A DNA stretch of 64,000 nucleotides, from the IMG/VR virus record IMGVR_UViG_3300034072_002211, positions 213,445 to 277,444 of that record; one strand, 5' to 3'. The notes beneath the pieces were generated by a model. The model was given only the letters and a program-made list of their open reading frames with translations, did no database searches and was not told where the DNA came from. The translations under genes and the position numbers were made by a program. Shown here in pieces: positions 2,355 to 63,495 of the stretch (position 1 is its first letter; each line of letters starts with the position of its first letter).

Positions 2355-3125
2355 TTAGCGGCTCAGCTTCATGAGCATTGCGGTGTCTCGGAGGCTGTTG
2401 GGCATCCGCATGATCTTCTTGGTTGCGTTGTTCTCAAGCGGGATGCGGTCCCGCTCACCGGTGTCCACGCTCTCGATGACCACGCGGCGTTCGTCCGCAA
2501 AGCCCTTGACCATACAGATGTCCAGCCCTGCCCCATAGTTCAGGGCCACCACGACCAGATCACCGATTGTGACTTCCTGATCCAAACGGTCGGTGAAAGT
2601 CAGCGGACGCTTCGCTTCATTGATCTGGAAGACACGATCGCCCTGATAGTCGAGCAGAACGCTCAGATTGTTGTCCACCTCATTGCCGAAGAACTCAGGG
2701 TAGATGGTGGCTTCCTTAAACACGATCGGCTTGGTCCCGCTCAGGGTATAAATCCATGCTGCTCGTTTGGACCATGCCCAGCCCTTGTTCTTGTCAAAGT
2801 CCTTGACGAAGAAGCTCAGGGGAGTGCCACCGCCCTTGGTCAGACGCACATCGTTCTTGGGCTCGACCGTTGCCGCGAAGCTTGGACCATAGTCACCAAA
2901 GTTGGAACGCGGACCCTCTACCATTGCGGGAAAGATGCTGCCGCGGAAGATGCCGTTGTTGATCTTGATCCAGACCTCGCCCTTGAGAGTAGCCAGGCGA
3001 TCCAGCAAAGCATCACGCTCTGCGATCTGCTTGACTTCCTTGGCTGTGAGGTTCTGAGTGGGCACGAAGTTAGAACTCACATGCCACCAGTGATCCATGT
3101 TGGTCTGGCGACGAAGCTCAATCAT
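2355..3125 (-). CDS. hypothetical protein with C-terminal SH3-like module
   Basis: C-terminus resembles that of 38874..39665. Confidence 0.7.
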   Translation of the reverse strand: MIELRRQTNMDHWWHVSSNFVPTQNLTAKEVKQIAERDALLDRLATLKGEVWIKINNGIFRGSIFPAMVEGPRSNFGDYGPSFAATVEPKNDVRLTKGGGTPLSFFVKDFDKNKGWAWSKRAAWIYTLSGTKPIVFKEATIYPEFFGNEVDNNLSVLLDYQGDRVFQINEAKRPLTFTDRLDQEVTIGDLVVVALNYGAGLDICMVKGFADERRVVIESVDTGERDRIPLENNATKKIMRMPNSLRDTAMLMKLSR

Positions 3126-3430
3126 ACAAAGAACTCCACATTGGGATACATAGCCCGACGATACGCGATTGCCTCGCCGTTGAGCCAGGGTGCGTGACTG
3201 GTCAACGCGGGAGCCAAATCAGGTCTCCTAAACGCCCGAGCCCAGCTGTATTGGACGTGGGGTTGATCTTCATAGAAGGCGATAAAGCGGCGATCACGCA
3301 CCTGCTTCGAAAACGATTTGGACCAGCTCTTCCTCGCATGGAGGATCACCAGCGGGTGAACGTGTGGACTGGCATTCCGGCGCATCGCTGCGACCAGTCC
3401 CAAGCTTTGCCCTCTTAGCTGTTTCCTCAT
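3122..3430 (-). CDS. hypothetical basic protein
   Basis: ORF overlapping the next start by 4 nt. Confidence 0.5.
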   Translation of the reverse strand: MRKQLRGQSLGLVAAMRRNASPHVHPLVILHARKSWSKSFSKQVRDRRFIAFYEDQPHVQYSWARAFRRPDLAPALTSHAPWLNGEAIAYRRAMYPNVEFFV

Positions 3431-3770
3431 TGAACTTCCGTAGCATCACTGAGTCCTGTGTCAAACCCAGATAGTTGCGAATTGATTGGTTCCCGGCCAG
3501 AGCCTTCTCCAACTTGCTTGTGGGAAGACAGCTCAGGAACCCGTTGACTTTGGAGCAATATAGGGCGAGGATCTTTGCGTTCTTCCAGCGCACGATCCAC
3601 CATGTCTTGGTATTGGATTTGCGGCCCACATAGTTGCTCTTGTGGCCGTTCTTTATCTGATCACGCAGGGCTAGCCACTCATGGTGTTCCATATTGTGGA
3701 TGCCATATCGTTCACCCAAGCGAGCGCGGAAGTGTCTCCAAGCGCCGCGCTGGGTTTTCTGAAAGTTCAT
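3294..3770 (-). CDS. hypothetical protein
   Basis: ORF with RBS; 3' end overlaps the neighbour by ~135 nt. Confidence 0.55.
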   Translation of the reverse strand: MNFQKTQRGAWRHFRARLGERYGIHNMEHHEWLALRDQIKNGHKSNYVGRKSNTKTWWIVRWKNAKILALYCSKVNGFLSCLPTSKLEKALAGNQSIRNYLGLTQDSVMLRKFNEETAKRAKLGTGRSDAPECQSTRSPAGDPPCEEELVQIVFEAGA

Positions 3771-12190: not shown

Positions 12191-13885
12191 CTAAGCGTCA
12201 ACCTGTTCGTATTGACGTAACAGCGCAATGGTGTTTCTGAGCCCGTAAGCCACTGTGAAAGCACCGAAACGTGGCCCATCGCTTGAACCCAAGAGACATT
12301 CGTAGAGAGCTTGGAACCATGACCGCAACGGCTCAAACTCATGCTTCTTGCCGACCTCATAGACCTGATACTGATAATGCTCGGCGGTCATGTTTTCGAG
12401 CATCAGAGAGAAACGGGTCGCAAGCTCACTGAATGCTGCCCGCTCCTTCTCGGTGGGTTCTCGGCGAGAACGCTCAAACAGCCCCTTGTCGGTTGCGTAG
12501 GCGATGACCTTGGGAGCCATTTCCCGCGCATAAGCCGCGGTCGCGTCGGCGAACTCACGACCCTGCATCAAGTAAGCGAGCAGGTTCTCTGGCTGCTTGG
12601 CCTGAGCCACAACAGCCAAGTTGAGCATGAGTCCATGGGAGATGTCAGAGCTCAGTGGCTCAGGCAATTCCACGCGGAAGTGCCACGTGGCGTCATCGGG
12701 CGTCGTCTCAGCCTTCTGCCGCAACTTGACATACTGGTCTTCCAGCTGGGGCACGATCTCTCTGTAGAGCTTCTTTGCCGCGCGTGGGTTCTGAAACATG
12801 AACAGCATCAGGGAGCCAGTCGACCCATAGGTCAACCACTGCTCGACCGTAAAGCCGTTGCCCTTGCTCTTGCTGATCTTTGCGCCGTTTTCGTCCAGGA
12901 ACAGTTCATAGGTCAGGTTGAGCGGAGGGGTTCCGCCGAGGATCCGACAGATCTGGTTGGAAGCCTTGACGCTGTCAATGAGGTCCTTGCCAGACATCTC
13001 ATAGTCCACGTCAAAGTAGACCCAGCGCATCGCCCAGTCGACCTTCCACTGAAGCTTGGCATTGCCGTTGTGGCTCATCTGGCCACAGTGCTCACCGTCG
13101 TCCGTGACCCAGCCGATGTATCCACGTGCGCCAGTTGCCTCGGCCTTGACCTGCAGAACAGGGCCCTTGCCACACCAACGCGGCATAAACGGACTGTAGG
13201 TCGCCTTGCGATCATCCCCCAGCGTGGCGAGCATGATCTCCTGAATCTTGTCGAAGTTGTCCCAGACGCGGTTCAGCATCTCGTTGAACTTGCCGGACTT
13301 GTAATAGCGCGAGGAGCTCACAAAGCTCACAGTGCTGCGGTCGGGCGATGCTCCCACTTGGCCGCCATTGTAGTCCTTGAGGATGCGATCCACAAACTCG
13401 CAGAGCTTGTCGTTGTTGGCTTCGGCAAAGGTCATGGGATCAACCATGACTTGCGTGACACCCGGATCGTTGGAATAGGGCGAAGGAACCTCACTGAGCG
13501 GCAGGCCCAGATACTCGTTCATCCACTCGGGCATGTCGTCAGGGACCTTACGCATTGCGTCATAGTCATCCGAGAACATGATCAGACGGGTCTTGTAGGC
13601 GTTCTGCGTGAGCTCATTGAAAGCGCGCATCACCCAGAGGGTGCGGACCACCTCACCAAAGGTGCCGATATGCGGAGCGCCCGAGGGACCATAGCCGGTC
13701 TCAAAGGTCACCACATCACCAGGCTTCTTGCCCTTCTTCTCGATATGAGCGAGAAGGCTGCGGGCCTCCTGGAAGGGCCAAGACTTTGCCTGGTCGAAAA
13801 TGGTAGCCTCCTTTGCCTGCTCTGCTTTGATGGCACGGATCCGCTCGATGAGGGCTTCCTCTTCCCAGCGGTTCATCATAGCCAT
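12191..13885 (-). CDS. lysS: lysyl-tRNA synthetase, class I
   Basis: GYGPSGAPHIGT HIGH, KLQWKVDWAMRW, KISKSKGN, GPRFG. Confidence 0.95.
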   Translation of the reverse strand: MAMMNRWEEEALIERIRAIKAEQAKEATIFDQAKSWPFQEARSLLAHIEKKGKKPGDVVTFETGYGPSGAPHIGTFGEVVRTLWVMRAFNELTQNAYKTRLIMFSDDYDAMRKVPDDMPEWMNEYLGLPLSEVPSPYSNDPGVTQVMVDPMTFAEANNDKLCEFVDRILKDYNGGQVGASPDRSTVSFVSSSRYYKSGKFNEMLNRVWDNFDKIQEIMLATLGDDRKATYSPFMPRWCGKGPVLQVKAEATGARGYIGWVTDDGEHCGQMSHNGNAKLQWKVDWAMRWVYFDVDYEMSGKDLIDSVKASNQICRILGGTPPLNLTYELFLDENGAKISKSKGNGFTVEQWLTYGSTGSLMLFMFQNPRAAKKLYREIVPQLEDQYVKLRQKAETTPDDATWHFRVELPEPLSSDISHGLMLNLAVVAQAKQPENLLAYLMQGREFADATAAYAREMAPKVIAYATDKGLFERSRREPTEKERAAFSELATRFSLMLENMTAEHYQYQVYEVGKKHEFEPLRSWFQALYECLLGSSDGPRFGAFTVAYGLRNTIALLRQYEQVDA

Positions 13886-39700: not shown

Positions 39701-39796
39701 TGGTAGGGGTGGAGGGATTCGAACCCTCGTCGTCGCCTAATCTGGGCTCTCGCAAGGTATAAGCTTGCCCGCTCTTGACCGCTGAGCTACACCCCC
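39701..39796 (-). tRNA. tRNA-Ile(UAU) with long variable arm
   Basis: Cloverleaf, loop CTTATAC, 23-nt variable arm, encoded CCA. Confidence 0.85.
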
Positions 39797-40189: not shown

Positions 40190-40268
40190 TGGTGGCCGTT
40201 GTGGGGCTCGAACCCACAACTCTCAGGGGTTTAGAATCCCCGGCTCTGCCAGCTTGAGCTAAACGGCC
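40190..40268 (-). tRNA. amber suppressor-type tRNA, anticodon CUA
   Basis: Cloverleaf GGCCGTT/AACGGCC, loop TTCTAAA, CCA. Confidence 0.85.
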
Positions 40269-46939: not shown

Positions 46940-48262
46940 TTATGTGACGCGGACCTTATCGTCAAGATATCGCTGACCCATATCCAACTCACTTAGGTAG
47001 TGGCAGTTGAGCATATAGGGGCGAAGAACCTCTGGAATCATGACGTCATCGGTCGTCTGGTAATTCTCCAGAACCGCAACCAAAGTGCGACCAACCGCCA
47101 AGCCAGAGCCATTTAGCGTGTGGGCGTAGAACGTCTCGCCATTGACCTTATAGCGGGTGTTCATACGACGCGCTTGGAAGTCGCCGCAGTTCGAGACGCT
47201 GCTGATCTCGCGGTAGGTGTTCTGGCCAGGAAGCCAGACCTCGATGTCGTAGGTCTTCTGTGCGCTGAACCCCATGTCGCCCGCGCACAATAGCATCGTG
47301 CGATAGGTCAGGTCCAACTTGGCCAGGATCTGCTCCGCGGCGTTGAGCATATAGTCATGCTCATGAGCACTCTGCGAAGGCTCACAGACAGTCACGAGTT
47401 CGACCTTTTGGAACTGATGCTGTCGGATAAGCCCGCGCGTGTCTCGGCCCGCAGAGCCCGCCTCTGAGCGATAGCAATCGGTGAGAGCCACGTAGCGATG
47501 CCGCCCACCCAAAAGGATCTGATCCGCATGAATGTTAGTCAGGCTGACTTCAGCCGTGGGGATCAGGAACTGAGTGGGTTCACTTGCTCCATCCTCATCA
47601 GCAATACCAAAGAGATCCTCTTTGAACTTGGGCAGTTGCCCCGTTCCGTAAAGAGCTTCCTCGTTGACGATGGTGGGAGGGATGACCTCACGGTAGCCGC
47701 GCTTGATCTGTTCATCCAGCATGAACTGTCCGAGAGCACGATGTAGTCGAGCCACCGGACCCTGAAGCATTGAGAAGCGCGAGCCGCTGATCTTTGCCGC
47801 CGCGTCAAAACCCAGATCGACTTGATCCAGTTCATAATGCGGTGTGCCATCCCTTGCGCCGACCTTGCCCCAGCGACGGACTTCCACGTTACTGGTCTCG
47901 TCCGTGCCATCTGGCACATCAGCCGCAGGCACGTTGGGACACATGATCAGGAATGCCTCGAGCATCTCTTCAGCGTGAGTTGCCTGAGCAGCCCACATTG
48001 TTTCATTTTGCTTGAGAAGCTTCACCAACTCCTTGAGGGCGTCAGCTGAAGCAGTATTACCCTCCTTCATGGCTTTGCCAATTTCCTGACTCTTGGCCTT
48101 GATTAGGCTGCGAGTGTCCTGAAGCCTCGTGAGCGCATCGCTACGGCGGCTTGCGAACTGCTGGATCTTGTCGATGTGGGGATCGTGCCCGCGGCGCTTC
48201 ATAGCAGCCACGAACTCATCCGGCTTAGCCAGGATGCCCTTGACGTCAAAGTGATACTTCAT
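46940..48262 (-). CDS. serS: seryl-tRNA synthetase
   Basis: GTGQLPKF, PTAEV, CYRSEAG, HQFQKVE, YREISS, HTLNGSGLAVGR. Confidence 0.97.
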   Translation of the reverse strand: MKYHFDVKGILAKPDEFVAAMKRRGHDPHIDKIQQFASRRSDALTRLQDTRSLIKAKSQEIGKAMKEGNTASADALKELVKLLKQNETMWAAQATHAEEMLEAFLIMCPNVPAADVPDGTDETSNVEVRRWGKVGARDGTPHYELDQVDLGFDAAAKISGSRFSMLQGPVARLHRALGQFMLDEQIKRGYREVIPPTIVNEEALYGTGQLPKFKEDLFGIADEDGASEPTQFLIPTAEVSLTNIHADQILLGGRHRYVALTDCYRSEAGSAGRDTRGLIRQHQFQKVELVTVCEPSQSAHEHDYMLNAAEQILAKLDLTYRTMLLCAGDMGFSAQKTYDIEVWLPGQNTYREISSVSNCGDFQARRMNTRYKVNGETFYAHTLNGSGLAVGRTLVAVLENYQTTDDVMIPEVLRPYMLNCHYLSELDMGQRYLDDKVRVT

Positions 48263-48339
48263 AGTGCCAGCTTGCTTCCAAATTGGAATAGAGTCAACCA
48301 TTCATGGCGAAGCCCCGGAGCGTCCTCCGGGGCTTGCTC

Positions 48340-55162: not shown

Positions 55163-55852
55163 TCAGTCGTCGTTCGAAACGCCGACAAAGCGCAGGATGA
55201 AGAGGAACATATTCAGGAAGTCGAGGTAGAGGTTCAGAGCCCCCATGACCACGATACGTCCCTGAGTGTCACCGTCCAGGCGGGGCGTGTAGGCTTCCTT
55301 GAGCGTCTGCGTGTCCCACGCGGTCAGACCGGCGAAGATCAGGATACCCGCAATGCCGATGAACAGGTTCAGACCCGTGCTGGGAATGAAGATGTTCAGG
55401 ATCATGAGCGCCAGCAGACCGAACAGCGCGAACACCAGGAACGCACCGATGGGGCCGAGGTTACGCCGGGTCGTATAGCCGTAAAGCGAACAGCCTGCGA
55501 AGCCCACCGCGCTAGCCAGGAAGGCCATGAGGATGGAACCGCCGGTGTAGCGGCTCAGGATCACCGACAGACCGAGGCCCTCGATGACCACGAACGACCA
55601 GTAGAGAGTGTGGAGGGTGGCCAGCTTCATGCGCTCGACACCGAGGCTCATTGCGAGCACCAGACCAAGCGGCGAGAGCGCCACCAGCCAGAACAGGAGA
55701 CCACCCTGCTTGAGGGTATCGACCAGGCCGCTCGCAGTGGCGAACCACGCCGCGCCGGCGCTGACCAGGAGACCCGTGAGCATCAGATTGTAGATGCTCG
55801 TCATATAGTTGCGAAGACCCTGGTCATAGGTCTCGCCGCGAGTGAGTTCCAT
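55163..55852 (-). CDS. Bax inhibitor-1/YccA family membrane protein
   Basis: Seven TMs; FAGLTAWDTQ.LK, ALNLYLDFLNMF. Confidence 0.95.
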   Translation of the reverse strand: MELTRGETYDQGLRNYMTSIYNLMLTGLLVSAGAAWFATASGLVDTLKQGGLLFWLVALSPLGLVLAMSLGVERMKLATLHTLYWSFVVIEGLGLSVILSRYTGGSILMAFLASAVGFAGCSLYGYTTRRNLGPIGAFLVFALFGLLALMILNIFIPSTGLNLFIGIAGILIFAGLTAWDTQTLKEAYTPRLDGDTQGRIVVMGALNLYLDFLNMFLFILRFVGVSNDD

Positions 55853-59357: not shown

Positions 59358-60290
59358 TCAGTCGAGCAAGCTGCTGACTGACTGCTCATCCGAGATGCGC
59401 TTGATTGCCTCTGCGAGCAATGGCGCCACGGTGAGCTGCCGGATCTTCTCCGCGCCGTGTTCCAGCGGGATGGTGTCCGTGATGACCAGTTCTTTGAGCG
59501 AACTATTGGCGACTCGTTCCAGAGCCTGCCCACTCAATACACCGTGGGTGCAGTATGCCGAAACGTCGCTTGCGCCAGCCTCTATGAGGGCCTTGGCAGC
59601 ATTGCAGAGCGTTCCCGCGCTGTCCACGATATCGTCGATGAGAATGCAGGACTTGCCCGAAACGTCACCGATGATGTTCATGACCTCCGACACACCGGCC
59701 TTTTCGCGGCGCTTGTCCACAATAGCAAGGGGTGCGTTCTCGAGGCGCTTTGCGAGCGCACGAGCCCGAACCACACCGCCAACGTCTGGGCTTACAACAC
59801 AAAGGTTGTCAATGACCATGCGGGCACGAATGTCTGCCGCGATCACTGGAGCAGCCGCGAGGTTGTCCGTGGGAATATCGAAGAAGCCCTGGATCTGACC
59901 AGCGTGGAGGTCGAGAGCCAACACACGATCCGCACCAGCAGCCGTGATCAAGTTGGCGACCAGCTTCGCGCTAATCGGCGTCCGAGGACCAGGCTTACGG
60001 TCTTGTCGAGCGTAGCCATAATAGGGAGTAACTGCCGTGATCCTGCGAGCCGAAGCGCGCTTGAGCGCATCGACGAGAACCAGGAGTTCCATGAGGTTGT
60101 CGTTGACCGGATTGCAGGTGCTCTGGAGGATGAATACATCCTCACCGCGCACGTTCTCCTTGATCTCCACGAAGATCTCTTCGTCTGCGAACCGACGAAC
60201 ACGGGCGTCAACGAGTGGAACCTCGAGATAGTCCGAGATGTTCTTTGCCAACTCTAGGTTGGCATTTCCGGCCAGCAGCTTCATCGTCAA
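59358..60290 (-). CDS. prs: ribose-phosphate pyrophosphokinase
   Basis: [38 protein letters not shown]. Confidence 0.97.
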
Positions 60291-62367: not shown

Positions 62368-62411
62368 TCAAAACTGTTAGTTGGGCTTGCGCTTTGCGTC
62401 AAGACCCTTTG

Positions 62412-62597
62412 TGGAGCCGAGGGGATTCGAACCCCCACAACGCGCTGACCCTAGCATTACCAAGGGCTGGTGTGTAGGTTCAAAGACTCGTCGCGAGCCT
62501 GTAAAAAATATCCCACACCATCTTACGCAGCTCGTCGGATTTTACTCCGAATCGCCCTGTCTTTTGCGACTGCCTGTCCCTCTAGGCGGACGGCCCC
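62412..62597 (-). ncRNA. minimal tmRNA-like RNA, 186 nt
   Basis: GGGGCCG/CGGCTCC-A acceptor with G3-U70, canonical T arm, internal reading frame DELRKMVWDIFYRLATSL-stop. Confidence 0.55.
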
Positions 62598-62605
62598 ATA
62601 GGTAT

Positions 62606-62957: not shown

Positions 62958-63060
62958 AAAATGGCTCCCAATGGTCGGCCTTCCTAGGTGCCTTCCATGC
63001 TCCTCGTGCTCGAGATCAGACCATGCAAGCGCGAAGCATTGACAGTGGGTGGAGCCTCTG

Positions 63061-63134
63061 AGCGGGTAAGGGGAATCGAACCCCTCTCTTCACCATGGCA
63101 AGGTGACATAATCAGACCAATATACTATACCCGC
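63061..63134 (-). tRNA. tRNA-Gly(GCC)
   Basis: Loop TTGCCAT, U73; CCA not encoded. Confidence 0.85.
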
Positions 63135-63141
63135 ATGTTCA

Positions 63142-63421
63142 ATCTCGAAGATCCGTAGCCGCGATCCTGTTCTATGCTACAATCTACCTCGCCAGGATTT
63201 CTCCTGACGGCCTCGGCATTACCCGATGGAGACTTACTGCCTCCTGGCTGCACCAACCCGTCCCAATAGCAGGGGAATTACCTAGGACTGTTTGGCTTGC
63301 TGGCTTAATCACGGTGGTCTCTTCCCTTGTGTCGGGGTATCACCCCAACTCCCACTCGTTCCCCACGCCAGTCGCGAACTTCCTCAAAGCTTTCGCCCTG
63401 CTGTAGCTCGACCGTCGAGAT
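63142..63421 (-). ncRNA. rnpB: RNase P RNA with reduced specificity domain, 280 nt
   Basis: P1 ATCTCGA/TCGAGAT, P2 GCTACAG/TTGTAGC, P3 GAAA hairpin, CR-I GAGGAAGTTCGCGA pairing CR-V ACAGGATCGCGGCT as P4 with bulged U, P5 CTGGC/GCCAG, CR-IV CAGCAAG. Confidence 0.9.
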
Positions 63422-63495
63422 TGGTACACCCGGAGGGACTCGAACCCCCATGACTCGGTAATCGGCCGAGCGCCTTGCCATTAGACGACAGGTGT
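63422..63495 (-). tRNA. atypical tRNA, nominal anticodon GAU
   Basis: Cloverleaf with CCA; loop CCGATTA has C33 and U37. Confidence 0.7.

Follow-up and report, generated by a model that had tools for sequence, protein, structure and literature searches.

A miniature type A RNase P RNA is probably encoded in the tRNA array of a jumbo phage

In a 64,000-nt stretch of DNA (hereafter the window) from the 277-kb IMG/VR viral contig IMGVR_UViG_3300034072_002211 (277,444 nt), we identified on the minus strand a 284-nt RNA gene (window 63140-63423, counted from the first to the last P1 pair) that probably encodes a miniature type A ribonuclease P (RNase P) RNA of a jumbo phage, the predicted catalytic subunit of an enzyme that would mature the tRNA precursors (pre-tRNAs) of the phage. 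A preliminary description of this DNA had placed such an RNA at 63142-63421, and the element is real, with slightly wider boundaries. The core of that description, in which a phage encodes an RNase P RNA whose catalytic domain is intact and whose specificity domain (S-domain) is drastically reduced, is supported by five lines of evidence: matches to the RNase P clan of Rfam, the helix order together with pseudoknot covariation, motifs like those of the Escherichia coli RNase P RNA (M1 RNA), co-oriented tRNA arrays, and a viral contig that carries lysyl- and seryl-tRNA synthetase genes (LysRS and SerRS).

A compact RNA gene between two tRNA genes

All 21 tRNAs detected in the window by ARAGORN are on the minus strand, and the RNase P-like RNA gene occupies the 287-nt gap between tRNA-Ile(GAU) and tRNA-Gly(GCC). 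The proposal that its 5' end abuts the CCA of the upstream tRNA was confirmed, since P1 starts at C63423, the second C in the CCA of tRNA-Ile. The 3' end of the RNA lies 5 nt ahead of tRNA-Gly. Positions in the RNA (i) correspond to window positions 63424-i. The minus strand of this interval folds with z = -5.1, a value that none of 200 shuffles equals, and the plus strand folds more weakly (z = -2.9). No open reading frame (ORF) over the interval exceeds 66 aa. A reading on the plus strand was dropped because of its weaker fold, the location of every model match on the minus strand and the lack of a meaningful ORF. A scan for promoters and terminators between 61.5 and 64 kb returned no more matches than expected from shuffles.

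The RNA belongs to an essentially phage-restricted family

Scanning IMG/VR with the 15-nt block of conserved region I (CR-I) of the element returned at least 119 loci, and about one third of the matches listed carry the full element. Twenty-five distinct copies were trimmed to their P1 helices, a structure was written on their alignment, and a covariance model (R1; 215 positions, 44 pairs) was built from them. In the window, R1 has a sole match in 64 kb, at 63139-63425 on the minus strand (149.7 bits, E 4e-38), and it detected about 52 elements in the first set of loci. A strict signature of conserved region V (CR-V), which is independent of CR-I, was then found in 47 contigs of up to 519 kb in a complete scan of IMG/VR, and all 17 loci that were new with this signature are R1-positive.

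The CR-V signature is present in at least 120 contigs from metagenomes and in only two contigs (2.3 kb and 203 kb) among 185,579 species-representative genomes, both from metagenome-assembled genomes (MAGs). The 203-kb contig (L125, CAZIWB010000009.1) comes from a Cellvibrionaceae MAG and probably represents a jumbo phage that was binned together with its host, because 14 co-oriented tRNAs surround the element; it hints at a host lineage. Using blastn with compact members of the family, we also matched three genomes deposited as "uncultured phage", of 735,411, 634,780 and 595,163 nt, in which R1 scores 162.7, 132.2 and 100.2 bits, respectively. Altogether the family comprises 57 distinct RNAs with a G+C content of 33-63%, the complete copies measuring 199-366 nt (median 231). 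As judged from these collections, it is essentially restricted to phages.

Most members are associated with tRNA genes. A tRNA on the same strand lies within 300 nt in 34 of the 57; 17 members directly adjoin an upstream tRNA, in 18 a tRNA lies no more than 10 nt away on the downstream side, and the neighbouring tRNAs are co-oriented with the element in essentially every case.

Covariation supports a type A catalytic domain with two pseudoknots

The main covariation count was made on an alignment of 40 sequences fitted to the model. Standard pairs are formed in 89.0% of the cells, compared with 58.1% in column shuffles and 34-47% with slid partners, and compensatory changes on both sides were detected in 42 of the 44 pairs (covariation score 0.768 vs 0.213). 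Because a model-based alignment is fitted to the structure, the count was repeated on a plain MAFFT alignment, in which 85.8% of the cells pair, both pseudoknots included, against 63.1% in shuffles and 33-46% with slid partners.

The individual helices behave in the same way. P1, P2, P3 and P5 pair in 79-99% of the cells, with compensatory changes in 24 of their 26 pairs. P1 is an 8-19-bp helix in every member; its sequences are unrelated from member to member and it begins directly after GGCUA. Pairing reaches 97% of the cells in P2 (6/6 pairs with compensatory changes), 99-100% in P5 (3/4 pairs covarying), 99% in P15 (3/3), 100% in P16 (3/3) and 86-96% in P17, and three to five pair types occur per position in P2, P5, P15 and P16. 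The P6 duplex was found in 39 of the 40 members as at least 15 different complementary pairs; the energy of a member's own pairs is -6.3 kcal/mol, compared with -1.9 kcal/mol for cross pairs (Mann-Whitney p 2e-20), and on the MAFFT alignment 80% of its cells pair and 5/5 pairs covary. P4 is nearly invariant, which is in part a matter of ascertainment as P4 had served as search query. The divergent huge-phage copies L122 and L123 nevertheless carry compensatory P4 variants (UCGACG/CGUCGG and AAC-U-UCGACA/UGUCGG-GU) that keep the bulged U. On this comparative evidence, the fold of the type A catalytic domain is under purifying selection and the specificity domain has been lost.

These data also bear on whether the element might be a decaying fragment of a captured host rnpB or a functionless chance fold. 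Sub-threshold Rfam scores, and the failure of Rfam to detect the window copy, would fit such an origin. Against it stand the 57 distinct members with their wide range of G+C content, the compensatory changes in nearly all pairs and the two pseudoknots, and covariation effectively refutes it; moreover, cellular genomes are essentially devoid of the family, and R1 matches the window copy with high significance. We therefore regard decay or chance as extremely improbable.

Anatomy of the window RNA

All helices drawn for the window copy (Table 1) consist of standard pairs only, and they follow each other in the order P1-P2-P3-P4-P5-P6-(stub)-P5'-P15-P16-P17-P6'-(P18)-P2'-P4'-P1', which is the order of type A RNase P RNAs. 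The preliminary description had listed P1-P5, P15 with its GGU, and P18 as correctly paired. This holds for P1-P5 and for P15 with GGU. For P18, a GAAA hairpin is indeed present at the expected place, but its identity is positional only; the window RNA has no P8, the docking partner of P18, and most of the compact members of the family are without P18.

P1 of the window RNA is composed of 9+5 bp. The P4 pseudoknot, formed by CR-I and CR-V, has 8 bp plus the bulged U63378, and its motifs align to RF00010 (the bacterial class A model of Rfam) and to E. coli: CR-I in the homologue from Stenotrophomonas phage DLP6 aligns to the RF00010 consensus GAGGAAAGUCC, and the E. coli counterpart of the window CR-V is ACAGAACCCGGCUUAUC. 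The AGCAA motif of the joining region J5/15 corresponds to E. coli A245-A249, among them the A248 that touches N-1 of the substrate, and aligns to E. coli AGCAAGGCC. The linker before P15 is CAA (3 nt).

The roughly 60 nt that had been assigned to the specificity domain were counted as 62 nt between the P5 strands, compared with about 160 nt in M1 RNA. In this remnant, the P6 5' strand is accompanied by a helix (63352-63358/63312-63317), a hairpin (63331-63349) and two junctions, GA and a purine-rich stretch of 13 nt; a single helix and a single hairpin thus stand in the place of P7-P14 with the CR-II/CR-III module that binds the T-loop. Two features go beyond the preliminary description, the P6 pseudoknot (63359-63364/63272-63277) and a three-way insert (63210-63248). 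Pairing of the P17 loop with the strand that follows P5, which creates P6, is a hallmark of type A RNase P RNAs that type B lacks. The three-way insert is shared only with L057 and L134, the closest relatives of the window copy, and is lacking in most family members; it shows compensatory changes, e.g. UCGG/CCGA to UCGC/GCGA.

Table 1. Elements of the RNase P-like RNA and its flanking tRNA genes in the window
Feature	Window position	Strand	Remarks
tRNA-Ile(GAU)	63422-63495	minus	upstream; CCA encoded; ARAGORN
P1, 5' strand	63409-63423	minus	first two nt are the CA of the tRNA-Ile CCA
P2	63402-63407 with 63176-63181	minus	6 bp
P3 hairpin	63385-63400	minus	6 bp, GAAA loop
CR-I block	63371-63385	minus	GAGGAAGUUCGCGAC; J3/4 and P4 5' strand, bulged U63378
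P5	63367-63371 with 63300-63304	minus	5 bp
Specificity-domain remnant	63305-63366	minus	62 nt between the P5 strands
P6 pseudoknot, 5' strand	63359-63364	minus	GGGGAA
J5/15 motif	63297-63301	minus	AGCAA; GCAA invariant in the family
P15	63294-63296 with 63252-63254	minus	3 bp
P16/P17 stem-loop	63260-63288	minus	its loop forms P6
P6 pseudoknot, 3' strand	63272-63277	minus	UUCCCC, in loop L17
GGU of L15	63256-63258	minus	P15/16 internal loop; invariant in the family
Three-way insert	63210-63248	minus	3-bp stem and two hairpins, loops AGUAA and GUAAUG
P18-position hairpin	63190-63209	minus	8 bp, GAAA loop; assigned by position only
J18/2	63182-63189	minus	AGGUAGAU; family consensus UAGAUAAAUG; E. 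coli UAGAUGAAUG
CR-V block	63155-63175	minus	AUAGAACAGGAUCGCGGCUAC; J2/4 and P4 3' strand
P1, 3' strand	63140-63155	minus	followed by AACAU, then tRNA-Gly +1
tRNA-Gly(GCC)	63060-63134	minus	downstream; ARAGORN

Homologues match the RNase P clan of Rfam

When cultured and deposited phages were searched by blastn with the window element, Stenotrophomonas phage DLP6 emerged as the sole relative. The DLP6 element (locus L001) is an unannotated gap within the tRNA array of this phage. It matches RF00010 over model positions 1-367 with 54.7 bits (E 8e-16 to 6e-14), the gathering score of RF00010 being 100 bits, and the alignment covers P1, P2, P3, GAGGAA-GUUC (CR-I), P5, AGCAA, P15, GGGU, UAGAUAAAUG (J18/2) and ACAGAAUCGCGGCUAC (CR-V), with about 49 nt standing for some 140 specificity-domain positions of the model. 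The window copy and the DLP6 element have a mean column identity of 75%, and their CR-I, J5/15-P15, GGU and CR-V blocks are identical. When 13 family loci were searched with Rfam, six gave full-length matches to the RNase P clan, all significant although sub-threshold (E 6e-14 to 3e-3); L124, L107, L017, L018 and L066 match RF00373 over its full length (E 1e-8 to 3e-3). The models for GOLLD, ROOL, transfer-messenger RNA (tmRNA) and Y RNA-like RNAs have no match at E <= 10 over 63135-63424.

The DLP6 match requires at least 1 kb of sequence context and is lost when the 263-nt element is searched alone, so the outcome of the tool depends on context and a negative result for the window copy is weak evidence.

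A probable role in the maturation of phage pre-tRNAs

We propose that the RNA would be transcribed within a polycistronic tRNA precursor, that 3' processing of tRNA-Ile would set its 5' end, and that RNase P cleavage at tRNA-Gly +1 would set its 3' end, with P1 plus AACAU remaining. The folded type A core would then remove the 5' leaders from phage pre-tRNAs and probably from host pre-tRNAs too, gripping its substrates mainly through contacts with the acceptor stem, the nucleotide at position -1 (N-1) and the 3'-CCA instead of the T-loop. Its specificity may perhaps be relaxed toward atypical tRNAs and Y RNAs, as the preliminary description had suggested. The phage, with at least 21 tRNAs and two aminoacyl-tRNA synthetases, might thereby gain extra or host-independent tRNA maturation.

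Such recognition is consistent with the retained motifs. In RNase P RNA, GGU reads the CCA of the tRNA and the A248-equivalent in AGCAA reads N-1 (PMC6582537, PMC11143913); among 20 tRNA genes of the window, 17 encode CCA and 14 have U at -1 (U-1), which match the retained GGU and AGCAA. The catalytic domain of E. coli RNase P RNA is active alone; its efficiency relies on pairing of the P6 kind, and it can do without P18 once the S-domain has been removed (PMC5839562). The phage family has kept P6 and mostly shed P18, the pattern expected were catalysis the function under selection.

The protein partner would most likely be the host RnpA, the RnpA-binding surface being located in the catalytic domain. 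No rnpA-like gene was detected in the window, in the flanks of family members, or in the DLP6 and huge-phage records; a scan for the RnpA "RNR" motif found it in the E. coli control only, and a tblastn search of phage records with E. coli RnpA gave nothing but bacterial contaminants. Since the window is only 23% of the genome and RnpA diverges fast, these negatives are weak evidence; the absence is compatible with the use of a host protein. Clustering of the neighbouring ORFs gave no universally linked protein.

In seven tRNA-array loci (L008:3778-4245; L001:5308-5745, DLP6 AAY80_173; L078:4113-4628; L092:5115-5564; L007; L097; L137), a gene for a PF04308 "RNase H-like" protein (DUF458/YkuK) lies 1-2 kb from the RNA in the same orientation; the window lacks such a gene. 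The protein is possibly a further RNA-processing factor.

Arguments against this role and alternative functions

Besides the failure to detect an rnpA, several observations weigh against an RNase P RNA that matures tRNAs. No RNase P family of Rfam matches the window copy at the gathering threshold or at E <= 10, in contexts of 297, 751 or 1501 nt. The search with RNaseP_bact_a that had been suggested as a check is thus negative for the window copy even at this permissive E value, and positive, below threshold, for the DLP6 homologue; every homologue scores far under the gathering threshold. In the reciprocal direction, R1, run without filters, scored 8.2 bits at the rnpB locus of E. coli, which is within noise, and homology to M1 RNA consequently rests on the Rfam matches, the architecture and the motifs. 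Compared with its bacterial counterpart, J3/4 lacks one A; P4 (UCGCGA/UCGCGG) departs in sequence from the bacterial consensus, and no T-loop-binding module is recognisable. The fetched flank of 13 of the 57 members, including the three huge-phage copies, has no tRNA gene.

Finally, the gene is interrupted in two close relatives of the window phage, L077 (IMGVR_UViG_3300034073_003340, 435,856 nt; 2853-3466) and L140 (IMGVR_UViG_3300034072_000973), where a 612-nt insert directly after CR-I replaces 11 nt that comprise the 5' strands of P5 and P6. The insert encodes a 199-aa SegE-like GIY-YIG homing endonuclease (PF19835, 27.2 bits) and leaves no space for a group I intron core. Because a homing-endonuclease gene interrupts these relatives, the RNA gene may not be indispensable.

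Two other functions were considered for a conserved RNA of this kind. The first is that of a retargeted, RNase MRP-like descendant of RNase P, still a ribozyme, which after losing the domain that reads the T-loop would act on other substrates, for instance tRNA-like elements, the long non-tRNA spacers of the arrays, host RNAs, or only CCA-bearing hairpins. The members without a tRNA gene nearby would agree with this, as would the long conserved non-tRNA spacers in the window array and the fact that, with the S-domain gone, the stub is itself conserved (helix, GA junction, hairpin and GUUnnUA junction). Yet GGU, AGCAA, the encoded CCA and U-1 fit ordinary pre-tRNA recognition, and the strongest genomic association of the family is with co-oriented tRNA arrays. 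The archaeal type T, for its part, is S-domain-less and is nevertheless treated as a genuine RNase P RNA that serves 5' maturation of pre-tRNAs (PMC3579882). We consider retargeting unlikely.

The second is a non-catalytic decoy that would sequester host RnpA, or compete with the host RNase P RNA for it, and so alter or halt host tRNA maturation. The retained catalytic domain would offer the RnpA-binding surface for this, and no phage rnpA was detected in the window, the member flanks or the records searched with tblastn. An RNase P-like RNA of orthopoxviruses provides a precedent with a proposed decoy role (PMC3001073). In a decoy, however, the near-invariant active-site and substrate-binding elements (the bulged U of P4, J18/2, J2/4, GGU and J5/15) would be superfluous, and they have been kept through compensatory changes; a phage with at least 21 tRNA genes also needs RNase P activity, not less of it. 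A decoy is accordingly a quite unlikely explanation, and maturation of phage pre-tRNAs is the function that we favour.

Other genes and RNAs of the window and related loci

The window also encodes a DNA methylase. Class I LysRS, SerRS, phosphoribosyl pyrophosphate synthetase, NAD synthase and a membrane protein of the Bax1-inhibitor family are encoded at 12194-13885, 46943-48301, 59361-60290, 1061-2113 and 55166-55852, respectively, all on the minus strand. Such auxiliary gene content is typical of "huge phage" genomes. Because it is part of a viral contig and holds the tRNAs, LysRS and SerRS, we regard the window as a jumbo-phage fragment rich in translation-related genes.

The tRNA arrays contain several unusual elements. 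At window 40190-40268 (minus strand) lies an amber-suppressor-type tRNA whose anticodon is CUA and which ARAGORN labels tRNA-Pyl; a similar tRNA was found in L041 (8568-8641). This suggests that the phage may recode TAG. The genes for tRNA-Ile(UAU) are unusually long (92-96 nt) in the window (39701-39796, minus strand), in DLP6 (L001:1924-2015), in L078 (1028-1122) and in L031 (7425-7519), and may contain an insertion, an intron or an extra arm. The 238-nt spacer between tRNA-Met and tRNA-Phe (window 62368-62605, minus strand) has a 3' end resembling a T-arm and acceptor (GGGGGUUCGAAUCCCC...CUCCA). Neither ARAGORN nor Rfam calls a tRNA in this spacer, which is about 80% conserved in L077 and folds with a z of only -2.2; it may represent a tRNA-like RNA, or one that is split or contains an intron. 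In DLP6, the start of the tRNA array carries an unannotated permuted tmRNA (KU682439.2, ~102838-103059; L001:24-245; RF04321, 136.8 bits, E 1e-26).

Novelty and implications

RNase P RNA is regarded as a housekeeping ribozyme of cells and organelles. Full-text searches of the literature outside subscription journals turned up no account of an RNase P RNA encoded by a phage. The paper on the DLP6 genome is silent on both RNase P and tmRNA, a 2024 history and review of RNase P refers to phage only as a source of substrates, and a 2026 paper on RNase P evolution leaves phages unmentioned. Rfam 15 has no model that captures the phage family, and because current Rfam models miss this class, the gene has stayed unannotated in phage genomes, the largest known included.

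If the proposed function is correct, the viral "translation toolkit" of tRNAs, aminoacyl-tRNA synthetases and tmRNA would extend to a catalytic RNA. More broadly, though with somewhat less assurance, we favour the view that large and giant phages own a clade of bacterial-type RNase P ribozymes that, at about 200-290 nt, are the smallest known. These would be catalytically competent without a specificity domain, would release themselves from tRNA polycistrons and would free phage tRNA maturation from host rnpB; they would be the first viral ribozymes of the translation machinery to act in trans, and a natural experiment on minimal RNase P. The family offers dozens of variants that show what evolution keeps after the specificity domain is lost: P6 and GGU are kept and P18 is not, as in deletion experiments. 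Stenotrophomonas phage DLP6 offers a culturable test system.

Comparison with known RNase P RNAs and viral ribozymes

The phage family probably descends from bacterial class A RNase P RNA (RF00010; M1 RNA), with which it shares P1-P3, the P4 pseudoknot with its bulged U, P5, P6 and the order and topology of P15-P17, as well as the joining motifs GAGGAA-G-U, AGCAA, GGGU, UAGAUnAAUG, ACAGAA and GGCU-A. It differs in a specificity domain of about 50-60 nt, compared with the P7-P14 region of about 160 nt in E. coli, and in total length (199-366 nt, median 231, vs 377 nt). The phage RNAs also have a J3/4 that is one nt shorter, another P4 sequence and mostly no P18, and their genes are often located inside tRNA arrays.

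The archaeal type T is likewise a natural RNase P RNA that has kept its catalytic domain and lost most of the specificity domain, and it was missed by existing Rfam models until a dedicated model was made (PMC3579882). In type T, the catalytic domain is of the archaeal kind, P2 has 3 bp, P15 is shortened, P5 and P15 are linked by 2 nt, and the proteins are archaeal, whereas the core of the phage RNA is of bacterial type A, with 6 bp in P2, a 3-nt linker, P6/P16/P17 and the GGU of L15. The RNase P-T model has no match in the window at E <= 10. The likeness to type T is one of convergent reduction, not of membership.

In the engineered catalytic domain of E. coli RNase P RNA ("CP RPR"), a P6-like pairing is important and P18 is dispensable (PMC5839562), and the phage family likewise keeps P6. 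The engineered domain and other minimal RNase P constructs, however, are laboratory deletions of lower efficiency, whereas the phage form is natural, evolutionarily maintained and equipped with a conserved stub of its own. RNase P RNAs of bacteria of the Candidate Phyla Radiation (CPR) also fall below the noise cut-offs of Rfam, and some lineages lack P12, P13, P14, P18 or P15 (PMC8172020). Those, in contrast, are essential genes of the cells themselves with most of the S-domain kept, whereas the phage family occurs in only 2 MAG contigs of 185,579 genomes.

Two viral systems are also comparable. The RNase P-like RNA of camelpox virus and other orthopoxviruses is virus-encoded and resembles RNase P RNA (PMC3001073), but it belongs to a eukaryotic virus, its likeness is to nuclear-type RNase P RNA, a decoy role has been proposed for it, and it has no association with viral tRNA genes. 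Theta ribozymes, which resemble the hepatitis delta virus ribozyme, are phage ribozymes that lie beside viral tRNAs and have been implicated in tRNA maturation (PMC10879173). These are small RNAs of unrelated fold that cleave themselves in cis at the 3' trailers of tRNAs; the phage RNase P RNA, by comparison, would be a trans-acting, multiple-turnover enzyme of 5' processing.

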